This document shows, piece by piece, positions 14,035 through 23,598 of a stretch of 64,000 bases of DNA (position 1 is its first letter; the number at the start of each line of letters is the position of its first letter). Below the pieces are notes generated by a model. That model had not been told where the DNA came from, ran no database searches, and worked only from the letters and a program-made list of their open reading frames with translations. The stretch is from Ministeria vibrans ATCC 50519 (taxonomy: Eukaryota > Protista > Filasterea). Where the stretch lies: assembly GCA_943704425.1 (NCBI GenBank), contig CALSCP010002250.1, positions 15,736-79,735 of the forward strand. Reading direction: 5' to 3'. The translations under genes were made by a program, and so were the position numbers.

Positions 14035-17000
14035 ATGTCGTTTGAGCCGTGTGAACTGGAAGTTCGCTTGCGAGCGATGCTGAAGGAGCGCATGATGTTT
14101 ATGGACGGTGCGATGGGCACCATGGTGCAACAACACCGCCTGACCGAAGAGGACTTCCGCGCCAGCGAGTTTGCCTCGTGGGACAAGGCCCTCAAGGGCA
14201 ACAACGATCTGCTGTCGCTCACGCAGCCCGCCATCATCCGCGACATCTACAAGGGATACCTTCTGGCCGGCTCGGATTTCATCGAGACCAACACCTTCTC
14301 CGGCACGTCCATTGCCCAGGTAGGCCCCCTCCCCCCNNNNNNNNNNNNNNNNNNNNNNNNNNNNNNNNNNNNNNNNNNNNNNNNNNNNNNNNNNNNNNNN
14401 NNNNNNNNNNNNNNNNNNNNNNNNNNNNNNNNNNNNNNNNNNNNNNNNNNNNNNNNNNNNNNNNNNNNNNNNNTTGCTTGCCGCTCCCCCGCACAAGCCA
14501 ACAACTCAACCTGTTTTGCTGTTTCTCCTTTTGACAGGCCGACTACGGCATGGAGAAACTGGCGTACCGCATCAACTTTGAGGGTGCTCGTCTTGCCCGC
14601 GAAGTCGCGGACGAAGTCACAAAGGATCAGGTAGAGACAGCAGAAACAGTTTTGGTGCGATGTGTGTCGTGACTCACAATGTTTGATTCACAGCCGCACA
14701 AGCCGCGATTTGTGTGTGGCGCGATGGGTCCGACCAACCGCACGTGCAGCATTTCGCCGTCGGTGGAGAAGCCTGAGTACCGCAATGTGACCTTTGACGA
14801 GCTGGTGGACGCGTACAGCGAGCAGGCGCGCGGACTGCTGGACGGCGGAGCGGACATTCTCATGGTGGAGACCATCTTTGACACGCTCAACGCCAAGGCG
14901 GCGCTCTTTGCCATCTCCACGCTGTTTGACATGGGCACCTACCCGCGCGTGCCCATCTTCATCTCGGGCACCATTGTCGACAAGAGTGGTCGCACCCTCA
15001 GTGGCCAGACAGTCGAGGCGTTCGCCACGAGCGTCTCACACGCCCGACCCATGTGCCTCGGTCTCAACTGTGCCTTGGGTGCCAACGAAATGCGTCCCTT
15101 TATCGAAGCCATGAGCAAGTCCACCGACGCCTACGTCATGTAAACCAAATTAGTGTGTGTGTGTGTGTGCCACCGAAAGCGACTCATTCTCTTCGCTTAC
15201 AGCTGCTATCCCAATGCTGGACTCCCCAACACTTTCGGTGGCTACGACGAGACCCCAGAGCAGATGGGCACGATGCTGCGCGAGTTTGCCGAAAGCGGCT
15301 TTGTCAACCTGGTCGGTGGCTGCTGCGGAACCACACCCGATCACATTCAAGTCAGTACAAGATGTGTGTGAATGTCTGATTGACTCACTCTGGTTGTGTG
15401 TGTGTGTTAGGCGATTGTCACTGCTGTCCAGGATGTGACCCCGCGCGTCCCTCCGGCCGCTGTCAATCTCAATGCGATGATTCTGTCGGGCCTTGAACGT
15501 GTTGTGCTCGATCAAAACACAAACTTTGTCAACATCGGCGAACGATGTAAGTGAGACTGAGACAGACAAAAAAAAACTATTAGGCCGAAGTTAAACACAC
15601 ATATACTTTAGGCAATGTGGCGGGTTCAAAGAAGTTCTCCAAGCTGATCATTGGCGATGACTATGAGAGTGCGTTGGGCGTGGCCAAGTCGCAGGTGGAG
15701 CAGGGCGCGCAGATCCTGGACATTAACATGGATGAAGGTACAAAACAGCTCGATCTCTTTGACTATATATGTGTGTGGTGTGGGTTAGCATGCGAGTGAG
15801 TGGATTGTTGTGTGACTGAGTGAGAGTACATCTTTGTTTATTTAATTTATGAGTTCCGAGTACATCGTGGTTTGTAGTATTATCACGACATTGTTGTATT
15901 GGATCTATTCTGTTGACTGAATCCGTTATGATTTGTTTTGTGCAGGAATGCTCGACAGCAAATTTGCAATGACAAAATTTGTGAATTTGGTTGCGTCTGA
16001 ACCCGACGTCGCTCGAGTGCCACTGTGCATTGATTCATCGAACTTTAGTGTGGTGGAGTGTGGGCTTAAGTGCACCCAAGGCAGATGCATTGTCAACAGG
16101 TGAGAGAGAGAGAGAGAGCGCGCGCCAGACAGAGGCACAGAGACACACATTCATCGAGAGAGACGCGTATGTGGTGGGAGATTTTGTGTATGTCACGATG
16201 TATCTAATTGAGTCTATGCGTGTGCCATTAGACTGTACCAGTGACTCTTTTTTAGATGTCTTTGTTTTTGACTTGTGATCGTTTCTGACATACTTTTTCT
16301 TGTCTTTGTCATACTTTTCTTGTTTCTGTAGCATTTCGCTGAAGGAAGGAGAAGCCGATTTTATCGCAAAGGTAAACAACACACTCACACAGCCCATATC
16401 ATTCGCTCACCCACTCACTCTTATTTTCCCTCCTCTCTCTCTCTCTCTTGCCCCTATCGCGTTTGTTTCTTTCTGCCTCCTCTCTCTCTCTATCACTTTC
16501 TTTCTTTCTCCTTGCTCTTATCTTTCGCTCTTCTCTCTCTAATTCACCCATTCAGGCACGACTGATCCAACGCTACGGAGCTTCAGTGGTCGTGATGGCG
16601 TTTGACGAGACAGGCCAGGCCGCAGATGCACAGCGCAAGATTGAAATCTGCCATCGCTCCTACAAAATCCTCACTGAACAGTACGTTCTCGCTCATATTT
16701 ACCCTCAGAGTGTGAGGCAGCTCATTTTATCTCTGTGTTGTTTAGGTGTGGGTTCAACGCCAACGACATCATCTTTGATCCCAACATTCTCACCATTACA
16801 ACTGGTCTGGCCGAGCACAACAACTACGCGAAGGACTTTATCACTGCGACAAAATCAATCAAAGTCAGTCACACACTTACGGCGTCTCTCTTCATACGAA
16901 TGTTAAAACTTTGTTTTTCTTTCTCTCCATCGCGTTGTTTCTTTATCCACCCTTTCTATCACGTTGTTTCTTTCTCTTCTCTCTCTCTCTCTTGTATTAG

Positions 17001-20688: not shown

Positions 20689-23598
20689 ATGTCAACGCCA
20701 CACTCGACGGGGTATGTCAACCTCGACGACGACGACAAGATGGCCAAGAAACCGGACAAAAACGGCGTCAATCGAGTGTTTCTGCGTCGTCTCGTTGCCG
20801 TCGCGCGCATCGCCGTGCCGCGCTGGAAATCCCCTTCGTTTCTTGGCCTGGCCCTCCTGCTGCTGGTCTCCATTGCCGAGCAGTTTGTCATCCACGAAGT
20901 TGGCCTCATTCCGGCCCGCTTCTACACGGTAACATGTTTCTTATCACACTCGACCGTTTGTCTCGTGATGTCCTCTCTCACGCGACTCCCCCGTCAACCC
21001 CCACCCCCTTCTCCCACCCCCTTCTACCCTCTCTCATCACGCCGTCTTTCTGTTCCCATTGCCAGGTGCTGAACAACAAGGATCGCGCTGCTCTGCCGAA
21101 AACGATCAGCGTTGCACTCGCCCTTGTCCTCGTCATGGCCTGCACAGTCGCCTTAAAGACCTTCATTTCAGGCTACCTCAACGTCTTGCTACGCTCCAAC
21201 CTCGTCACAACGCTCCACAAGCGGTACTTTGCCTCGGGCGCCTTCTACTCCATCAACAATGCACCTCCCAAGGCTCCATCTCCGCTCTCGGTCGTCTCCG
21301 AACTAGAGACGCTCAACACGCCAGCCACTCCACCACAGACACAACAGCAACAGCATCACGGGAACAGCGAGCCGTCGCTATACGTTGACAACCCCGACCA
21401 GCGCATCACACAGGACGCCGATCGCTTTGCCATTGTCTCCAGCACCATCGCCGACAAGCTTCTCGTCATTCCCATCACCATCATCTACTACACCTATGCA
21501 GTATGGCACCAAATGGGTATGCCACAACATACTATTTCTATTACTATCTATATTCATATTATTTTCATTATTATTTTTCTGGGTTTTGTGTAGGCTGGTT
21601 TGGTGTTGTGTCAATTTACGTCTTTTTCGCCATCAACTCAATCCTGAACCAGTTCCTCATGAGCGCCCTCTCGCGTCTTGTCTATGCACTTGAAGCACGC
21701 GAAGGTGACTTCCGCTTTGCACACGTACGAGTGCGACGTGAAGCCGAACCCATTGCCTTCTACTCGCACCAGCAGCAACAACAACACTCTCAAAGTGATC
21801 TCACCCACGCAGAAGCGCCACTTTTGACAGAATCTCTGCTGACTCCTTCACTATCTGACCACTCTGAATCCCGCCAAATGGCCATTGGGGAGTGTTGTGA
21901 GTCTTCGCGTGTACACTCTCGATTCGAATCCGTCATTGCCATTCAGCGTCGCATTGTCATGCGCCAATTCCCTCTCTCCCTCTCTGTCCAGCTCTTTGAC
22001 TATCTCGGTTCCATTTTGTCCTATCTCATTCTGGCCGTTCCCGTCTTCTCCGGTGCATTCGACCATTACACTCCCGCTGAGCTCTCCTCCCACATTAGCG
22101 CGTGTGCCTTCATTGCAATCTATCTCATCTCTCAGTTTAGTGCCGCGACCAATCTTGCAACGCTCTTCTCTCGTCTCGCCGGTTACACTCACCGCTTAGG
22201 CGAACTTTGCGAGTCCCTCACACTCCACCATCAACACACATCAACACATTCGACCACCACCGCACATCACAACACCACACCACATGACGATGACCCCCCT
22301 TCGTCAAACCGTCTACTCCTGCGTGTCCGCCACATTACCGTCAAAACTGCCCATCAACACACAATCATTGAAAATGGCTCTTTCACTGTCCATCGCTCAC
22401 GCAACGTTCTTGTTAACGGCCTCAGTGGCGCTGGTAAAACCTCCCTCTTTCGTGCTCTCGCCGGACTTTGGCCCGTCGGTCGTTTGGGCTCTGTTTCGCC
22501 CTTTGGTTCCCTCCTTTTTTTACCTCAGGTTCATCTTAAAAAAAAAACAATAGTATAATAATATTAATTTTGTGCTTGTTATATCGTTTGCGTGCGTGTT
22601 TTAGGTTCCGTATGTCACTGAAGGATCTCTTATTGATCAAATCGTGTTTCCTCTTCAGTCCCATCAGGTTCCTTTCAGGTACCCAAAAGTGTATAACACT
22701 CAAGAAACGCAAAAAAAAAAAAAAAAAACGATTAAAATATGTTGATTGCTTGTTAGGAGCGAGAGTTTTTACGAGGCGATTCTGCGCGATGCGCAACTGA
22801 GTCATTTAATGAGTCGAATCGGGACACTTTCGGGAGTTCCGTCGCTCACCTTCCCCACACAAGAAGACGACGGCGAAGACGAGAGCACACACGACAGAGG
22901 GAGATCGAGTCGGTCTGGCCATCGTGGCCTGGAGAGTCGTCGAGGTGACTCGGACTGCTTTTGGTCTGTTGCGCTGTCTCCTGGTGAAAAACAACGGCTG
23001 GCCTTTGCGCGTTTGTTCTATCACAAACCAGATCTGGCAGGTGAGATATTATTTGCTACTCACGCTCAAACCACAGACACGCACCACAAACACTCACACC
23101 ACACAAAGACACACACCACACAAAGACACGCACCACAAAGACACACACAATCACTCACTCACACACAATATGGATTAATAGTGATTGATGAGGGAACGAG
23201 TGCTTTGGACGAGACGACGGAACGGGCACTGTACGAGCACTGTCGTGTGTTAGGGGTAACCCTGATGAGTGCTGCACATCGCTCCTCACTCAAGCAGGTG
23301 ACATCAAGAACGGAAAAAAGAAGACTGGATTTAATACTCTTTCTCTCTCTCTATCACTTTGTTTCTCTCTCTCTCTATCACTTTGTTTCTCTCTCTCTCT
23401 ATCACTTTGTTTCATTCTCCTCTCTCTCTCTCTCTCTCTCTCTCTCTCTCTCTCTCTCTCTCTCTTTCTTTCTCTTTCTTTCTTTCTCCCCTCTCTCTCT
23501 CTCTCTTTCTTTCTTTCTTTGTCCGTGTGCTATGATTGTAGTTTCATTCGCAGCTGCTCGAGATTAGCAATGGGGAGTTGATCATGTCCGATTTGTGA
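20689..23598 (+). CDS. ABCD4: ABC transporter subfamily D, ABCD4-like (lysosomal cobalamin exporter family), multi-exon
   Basis: EQFVIHEVGLIPARFYTVLNNKD, DNPDQRITQD, EAA-like EGDFRFAHVRVRREAEPIAFY, Walker A GLSGAGKTS, FLPQVPY, signature LSPGEKQRLAFARLFY (LSPGE as in ABCD4, not LSGGE of ABCD1-3), Walker B VIDEGTSALD; ends FHSQLLEISNGELIMSDL-TGA. Confidence 0.9.

Follow-up and report, generated by a model that had tools for sequence, protein, structure and literature searches.

A cobalamin-dependent methionine synthase gene beside an ABCD4-type transporter gene in a marine protist: two vitamin B12 genes that are probably neighbours by chance

Genes at the locus

The window analyzed here was a stretch of 64,000 nt, positions 15736-79735 of contig C2250 in its own assembly (G000; 29.7 Mb, 2860 contigs). 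It was eukaryotic, with a G+C content of 45-60% and many short GT..AG introns that often carried CT or TG microsatellites, and its source is a gene-dense, intron-rich marine protist. On the forward strand, a gene for cobalamin-dependent methionine synthase (MTR/MetH) was followed by a gene for a transporter of the ABCD4 type (20689-23598). An earlier note had read the two as a possible vitamin B12 gene cluster, a co-regulated module by which a predator of bacteria takes B12 from digested prey and uses it. Both gene identities in that reading were confirmed, and the order of MTR and ABCD transporter, with coordinates to 23598, was confirmed by locating the domains, the stops and the start of the open reading frame (ORF). 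The cluster itself fared differently: two ordinary, independently transcribed B12 genes probably lie side by side, and their adjacency is best read as a lineage-specific chance neighbourhood and not a functional cluster.

All searches were run exon by exon, the tree was calculated from exon 3 of the transporter alone, and protein lengths are sums of exon lengths. Logan contigs of four runs (DNA: X2 and X6; RNA: X8 and X14) were aligned to positions 18600-23700 of the window. The features of the locus are listed in Table 1.

Table 1. Features of the MTR-ABCD4 locus (positions in the window; TM, transmembrane segment)
Feature	Position	Strand	Evidence
Cobalamin-dependent methionine synthase (MTR/MetH) gene, many short exons	14035..20363	+	Pfam per exon, spliced RNA contigs
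137-N assembly gap inside MTR intron 1	14337..14473	.	S-methyl_trans profile continuity
MTR exon with cobalamin-binding signature GDVHDIGKN (DxHxxG)	18201..18404	+	Pfam B12-binding profile 1-52, E 3e-10; motif read in translation
MTR 3' untranslated region, ending in a genomic A23 run (20456-20478), then GAAA	20364..20482	+	Sequence; MTR mRNA contigs stop at 20446 and 20419
10-N gap (20483-20492) and misplaced 70-nt piece (20493-20562)	20483..20562	.	Identity to C761, DNA contigs X2 and X6
Intergenic DNA upstream of the transporter, presumed promoter	20563..20688	+	RNA depth 0 in bin 20481-20651, both RNA runs
ABCD4-like exon 1 (TM1; V60, P64, Y68 equivalents kept)	20689..20928	+	tblastn with vertebrate ABCD4, RNA joint 20927/21065, residue table
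ABCD4-like exon 2 (TM2-TM3, DNPDQRITQD motif)	21066..21516	+	Pfam ABC_membrane_2, PDB ABCD4 54 bits, RNA joints, GT..AG check
ABCD4-like exon 3 (TM4-TM6, cobalamin-pocket residues, linker, Walker A GLSGAGKTS)	21594..22528	+	PDB ranking, database matches, residue table
ABCD4-like exon 4 (Q-loop region)	22605..22678	+	RNA joints 22526/22603 and 22676/22755, tblastn
ABCD4-like exon 5 (ABC signature LSPGEKQRLAFARLF)	22757..23040	+	RNA joints, translation
ABCD4-like exon 6 (Walker B IDEGTSALD, H-loop AAHR)	23182..23297	+	RNA joint 23038/23180 in two runs; GT..AG at 23298/23541
ABCD4-like exon 7 (C-terminus FHSQLLEISNGELIMSDL, stop TGA 23596-23598)	23542..23598	+	RNA contig piece from 23540

The methionine synthase gene

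The MTR gene is an intact, canonical five-domain cobalamin-dependent methionine synthase gene. Its exons matched, in order, the Pfam families S-methyl_trans, Pterin_bind, B12-binding_2, B12-binding and Met_synt_B12, and thus the homocysteine-binding, pterin-binding, cap, B12-binding (with DxHxxG) and activation domains that mark the MetH/MTR family were all present in their usual succession. The stop codon was located at 20361-20363. The introns were short and rich in CT microsatellites, and two spliced RNA contigs of 3851 nt and 3124 nt spanned the 3' part of the gene, where four GT..AG joints were listed. The S-methyl_trans profile was matched at positions 2-61 by exon 14035-14334, at 61-91 by 14535-14669 and at 90-226 by 14679-15140. 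This continuity placed the gap of 137 N in intron 1, with no loss of coding sequence.

The transporter gene

The transporter gene comprised seven exons, and its GT..AG introns were supported by the joints of RNA contigs. The exon lengths (240+451+935+74+284+116+57) added up to 2157 nt, or 719 codons including the stop and 718 without it, and the reading frame closed. Vertebrate ABCD4 queries in tblastn covered residues 20-590 of ~605. A stretch at 23041-23181 that could code for His and Thr was missing from the spliced RNA in two runs, which showed it to be an intron. An alternative end of the gene at 23583 was rejected, since the TGA there is out of frame and the in-frame stop is at 23596-23598.

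The transporter RNA contig began at 20691, which is 2 nt inside the ATG at 20689, so that this start codon was unproven in mRNA. The in-frame ATG that follows is at 20740. Translation may start at either one, and in the latter case the N-terminal 17 residues (including GYVNL) would be untranslated.

Two low-complexity inserts relative to animal ABCD4 were found in exon 3, and both were kept in the mRNA. One (21765-21890) formed a Gln/Ser-rich loop after the segment EGDFRF...AFY, and the other (22290-22400) formed a His/Thr-rich linker between the transmembrane domain (TMD) and the nucleotide-binding domain (NBD). At the other end of the gene, a transporter RNA contig of 3740 nt ran ~1480 nt past 23700, towards a HUWE1-like ORF starting near 24640. 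This extension either is a very long 3' untranslated region or reflects an overlap between the transcripts of ABCD4 and of the next gene downstream.

Assignment of the transporter to the ABCD4 family

The exons carried ABC_membrane_2 (PF06472) and ABC_tran (PF00005) with a single NBD, which is the architecture of a half-transporter, and the NBD motifs GLSGAGKTS, LSPGEKQR, IDEGTSALD and AAHR were intact in the translations. Against the PDB, exon 3 scored 166 bits with human ABCD4, compared with 77 for plant CTS, 53 for ABCD3 and 36 for ABCD1, and ABCD4 was the sole match of exon 2 (54 bits). All of the best 120 database proteins were named ABCD4. In an exhaustive search of representatives, the best match was ABCD4 of Capsaspora (42% identity), followed by a bird (hummingbird) ABCD4, unlabelled proteins, and tunicate, echinoderm, choanoflagellate, ichthyosporean and chytrid proteins. 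When choanoflagellate ABCD4 served as the query of another protein search, most of the matches were animal ABCD4, and choanoflagellate sequences derived from genomes were not among them. Two metagenome scans for relatives of exon 3 gave nothing, or matches of 21-40% identity that were probably non-orthologous.

The organism's own genome contained three ABC_membrane_2 genes, namely the window gene and one each on contigs C778 and C1049. The gene on C778 was ABCD3-like (243 bits to ABCD3, 142 to ABCD1 and 55 to ABCD4), and that on C1049 was ABCD1-like (104 bits to ABCD1 vs 65). In the IQ-TREE phylogeny of exon 3 (LG+C20), the window gene fell inside the ABCD4 family, in a clade of holozoan, amoebozoan and apusomonad sequences with an SH-aLRT of 99, and the exons of its own ABCD1-like and ABCD3-like paralogues were set off from it by a long branch (SH-aLRT 96). 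The exon 3 tree thus supported the proposed orthology with ABCD4. The branch of exon 3 was itself long, and its exact position within the ABCD4 tree was unresolved. The tree was built without named animal ABCD1-3 full-length sequences and without a fragment of the own ABCD3-like gene that comprises the NBD only; this fragment had fallen inside the ABCD4 set in a first FastTree run, which was taken as an artefact of partial coverage.

The motifs previously named as diagnostic of ABCD4 were of unequal value. LSPGE discriminated well, as it was present in 276 of ~300 ABCD4-family proteins, and the own ABCD3-like gene has LSGGE at this place. EGDFRF did not, because the same ABCD3-like gene carries LEGDFRF. 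ABCD1-3 possess a long hydrophilic N-terminal region for peroxisome targeting that is lacking in ABCD4 (PMC4960490). The window protein had no such long N-terminus, and its alignment started at residue 31 (14 when counted from ATG 20740) opposite residue 20 of ABCD4. On the basis of the PDB ranking, the paralogues in its own genome, the tree and the cobalamin-pocket residues described below, the transporter is by its sequence of the ABCD4 type and a predicted ABCD4 orthologue, rather than a member of ABCD1-3.

The cobalamin pocket

A recent structural study of the ABCD4-LMBD1 complex (2026) reported 13 cobalamin-contact residues in human ABCD4, namely V60, P64, Y68, N93, D278, Y279, Y286, F315, I318, Y319, I321, S322 and D329, and showed that D329K impairs transport (PMC13434180). 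Bat ABCD4, which has all 13 contact residues and the catalytic E549 at the human positions, was used as the reference for numbering. Eleven of the 13 contacts were identical in the window protein (V60, P64, Y68, D278, Y279, Y286, F315, I318, Y319, I321 and S322), as were 7 of the 8 contacts termed highly conserved in that study (PMC13434180). N93 was replaced by Met, at a position that is variable even among animals. D329 was replaced by Asn (region 22120-22122, exon 3), a position at which Asp is retained in the table's other holozoan sequences. In the exons of the own ABCD1-like and ABCD3-like genes, most of the aligned contact positions were different, and the pockets of several other protist and fungal family members were much more divergent than that of the window protein.

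The sequence between the two genes

In the assembly, the MTR stop and the transporter ATG were 325 bp apart, in tandem on the same strand, with a gap of 10 N and a 70-nt piece between them. The tandem arrangement and the gap stand as first described; the spacing does not, and the fragment of an EGF-type gene noted in the interval is not an intergenic feature. These 70 nt were 69/70 identical to C761:15578-15646, a Cys-rich (EGF-like) coding region of the same assembly. The contigs that hold 20493-20561 continue on both sides into sequence unlike the window, and the flanks of the C761 copy are found as loose ends of DNA contigs in X2 and X6. This indicated that the piece is misplaced, and that the gap and the piece together are an assembly artefact foreign to the MTR-ABCD4 locus.

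DNA contigs from two independent studies (X2 and X6) carried A17-23 GGAAAGC immediately before position 20563, and the left edge of the gap in the window reads ATACCC-A23-G-AAA-N10. With the matching edges joined, the corrected distance between stop and ATG was ~248 bp. We expect the true junction to be ...ATACCC-A23-GGAAAGC-AGACTAAAAG..., which is ~80 bp shorter than the assembly. This junction sequence was not found in the assembly, and none of the DNA or RNA contigs of the four runs reached across the A-run with unique sequence on either side. Nevertheless, the identical run length, the matching bases that follow it and the assembler's own scaffold link make it very likely that the two genes are truly adjacent.

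Genomic A-runs of 21-64 A followed by a GGAAAG-like, purine-rich sequence were observed in at least 15 other places with unrelated flanks, one of which also abuts an N gap. The ends of the MTR mRNA contigs lie ~10-37 nt upstream of the A-run that starts at 20456. Such long A-runs may mark 3' ends, or they may simply break assemblies.

Near-identical sequence was present in 2011 and 2022 runs that bear the label of one organism, as well as in metagenomes from algal culture and seawater. In the algal-culture metagenome X6, the same locus (19012-23636) differed by 6 single bases and 2 small indels over ~5 kb, and therefore a closely related strain lives in that community.

B12-related genes elsewhere in the genome

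An orthologue of LMBD1 was found at C31:157064-158110, with 163 bits to human LMBD1 (chain 24vc_C). An LMBR1-family gene on C341 was rejected as LMBD1, as it had no solved relative and is probably of the LMBR1/LIMR type. Methylmalonyl-CoA mutase (MCM) was encoded on C2390. MMADHC gave no match in the own genome at the default threshold; a weakly matching exon on C173 (E 0.16) had a translation that looks MMADHC-like. The Pfam profile of MMACHC (PF16690) had no match in the own genome either, which was uninformative, since the controls could give none as well. MetE (PF01717) was not matched in the own assembly, though control genomes gave matches.

The lack of a detectable MetE makes dependence on B12 likely, and this protist is probably auxotrophic for B12, with an intracellular B12 route of the animal type. 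By homology, the ABCD4 half-transporter would dimerise, LMBD1 would escort it to the lysosome or phagolysosome, and ABCD4 would export cobalamin to the cytosol. From there, the cobalamin would be passed on to MTR and MCM by MMADHC and related chaperones. We infer the localisation, the substrate and the route as a whole from these relationships. The presence of LMBD1, MMADHC and MCM together with the absence of a detectable MetE makes the use of prey-derived B12 plausible, as had been proposed. The same data did not favour a linked module for this purpose, because LMBD1 (C31), MMADHC (C173) and MCM (C2390) all lie off the contig that holds MTR and ABCD4.

Neighbourhood, expression and chance

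The neighbourhoods of ABCD4 were read up to ±10 kb, some of them shortened by contig ends, by annotation and by tblastn with six exons of the window MTR, which recovered the window itself as a positive control. They were taken from 12 other eukaryote lineages: Capsaspora, Thecamonas, Polysphondylium, Cladochytrium, Dinochytrium, Quaeritorhiza, Paraphysoderma, Calcarisporiella, Piptocephalis, Actinia, Sycon and one metagenomic eukaryote, of which six are fungi, mostly chytrids. MTR was absent within ~10 kb of ABCD4 in 12/12, and hence conserved synteny of the two genes, Capsaspora included, was not found. The literature searched held no report tying ABCD4 to methionine synthase by synteny.

The mRNAs of MTR and the transporter were assembled separately, and RNA depth between the genes was zero in both RNA runs. 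The ratio of ABCD4 to MTR contig depth was ~2.8 in X8 and ~0.13-0.28 in X14. This shift of more than 10-fold, in what is a poor measure of expression, was a weak hint against strict co-regulation. An Rfam scan of 13000-25000 found no element, including a cobalamin riboswitch.

The other large ORFs of the window were a P450, a kinesin, a Sushi-repeat protein, H2A, an EGF-repeat protein and the giant ORF labelled HUWE1-like in the earlier reading. No further B12 gene was found among them, and the supposed cluster thus comprised two linked genes only. Short intergenic distances were normal within the window.

The frequency of such a pair was estimated on our own assumption of ~8-10 thousand genes and ~10 B12-pathway genes. 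The chance that ABCD4 has a B12 gene as its neighbour was ~0.2%, and that of any such pair was ~1% per genome. As ~250,000 windows were scanned, a coincidence of this kind is expected, and a pair of B12 genes brought together by chance is unremarkable.

Evaluation of the alternative explanations

Here, several explanations were weighed against a chance neighbourhood of two independent genes. It is possible in principle that the 10-N gap joins two contigs that lie apart on the real chromosome. The foreign 70-nt piece sits at exactly the join between MTR and ABCD4, no contig spans the A-run from one unique sequence to the other, and the assembly has at least 15 further runs of 20 or more A with a GGAAAG-like sequence after them. 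However, the A23-G-AAA on the left is matched by the A23-GGAAAGC found before 20563 in contigs from two studies, the run has the same length on both sides in a genome where the length of such runs otherwise ranges between 21 and 64 A, and scaffold links made by the assembler itself join the same two contigs. A scaffolding error is thus unlikely. Similarly, a transporter that belongs to the ABCD4 family may not carry cobalamin in this organism and may have no functional link to MTR. The Asn at D329 and the Met at N93, the far more divergent pockets of several protist and fungal family members, and the lack of any functionally characterized non-animal ABCD4 in the literature found all speak for this explanation. 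It is opposed by the 11 human-identical contacts out of 13, a count above that of most non-animal homologues in the table, by the presence of the gene for the partner LMBD1, and by the variability of N93 even among animals, and we consider it improbable.

The remaining explanation is a selected, co-regulated module for B12 salvage and use, held together by a shared chromatin domain or by a control region responsive to B12 or methionine. The two genes are on the same strand at a corrected spacing of ~248 bp, both are expressed, they are directly linked in function through cobalamin (PMC8113721; PMC13434180), and B12 supply matters to an organism in which no MetE was found. Against this stand the missing linkage in 12 other lineages, the location of LMBD1, MMADHC and MCM on other contigs, the separate mRNA contigs with zero depth between them and a depth ratio that moves from ~2.8 to 0.13-0.28, the absence of an Rfam element in 13000-25000, and the ordinary nature of short intergenic distances in this window. 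The co-regulated module that had been proposed was therefore not supported, with the depth ratio as weak evidence, and such a module has a low probability, although somewhat above that of either preceding explanation. Its most specific form, in which MTR and ABCD4 were brought and kept together by selection as a minimal two-gene unit for phagolysosomal B12 release and use under common B12- or methionine-responsive control, is doubtful to a slightly greater degree.

The cluster reading is without support beyond the adjacency itself, and it fails the conservation test wherever this was applied. Some points nevertheless weigh against a chance neighbourhood. A same-strand spacing of ~250 bp between two functionally linked genes is improbable a priori (by our estimate ~0.2-1% per genome). 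The closest ABCD4 compared is only 42% identical, so that conservation restricted to the lineage may still exist. Co-expression was gauged from the contig depths of two runs, a poor measure, and with Asn at the D329 position the handling of the substrate could differ. Accordingly, a lineage-specific functional module retains a small share of the probability, and the preferred explanation is still that two ordinary B12 genes became neighbours by chance.

Significance and comparison with known systems

If a selected two-gene unit were real, it would be the first eukaryotic gene cluster for vitamin B12 to be described. As long as neither conservation nor co-regulation is demonstrated, the adjacency of MTR and ABCD4 is a curiosity. 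The more general result is a free-living protist with an animal-type intracellular B12 route, consisting of LMBD1, ABCD4, MMADHC, MTR and MCM, and with no MetE detected. The literature found describes the function of ABCD4 in animals only, and this organism could serve as a simple unicellular system for the function of ABCD4 and LMBD1. In addition, the assembly was corrected at 20483-20562.

The yeast GAL, DAL and BIO clusters consist of adjacent non-homologous genes of one pathway. The window resembles them in that non-homologous genes of the same pathway are probably adjacent; it differs in having just two linked genes, no conservation in the lineages examined, and a pathway that is otherwise dispersed. 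Human MTR and ABCD4 are on different chromosomes. Compared with human MTR and E. coli MetH, the window MTR has the same order of five domains, the DxHxxG signature and the activation domain, and differs in that short introns with abundant CT microsatellites split its gene into many pieces.

ABCD4 of Capsaspora owczarzaki (XP_004348078.2, 727 aa) shares 42% identity with the window protein over exon 3, is similar in length and falls in the same unresolved clade with an SH-aLRT of 99. Its genomic neighbours are different, namely genes with SMC, DDHD and CTLH domains and one without a Pfam match, with no MTR within 10 kb.

Human ABCD4 (cblJ), the lysosomal cobalamin exporter (6JBJ, 24vc-24ve), is ~33-40% identical to the window protein and has 606 aa, compared with 718 codons in the window. 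The window protein is longer because of its low-complexity inserts, the Gln-rich loop after TM4 and the His/Thr-rich TMD-NBD linker. It differs further in the Asn at D329 and the Met at N93, and its function and localisation are predicted from sequence. The two are alike in the combination of ABC_membrane_2 and ABC_tran with a short N-terminus, in the LSPGE signature, Walker A, Walker B and H-loop, in 11 of the 13 cobalamin contacts, and in the presence of an LMBD1 gene in the genome. Together with the animal-type B12 route, this near-human cobalamin pocket speaks for lysosomal cobalamin export being ancient and older than the metazoans.

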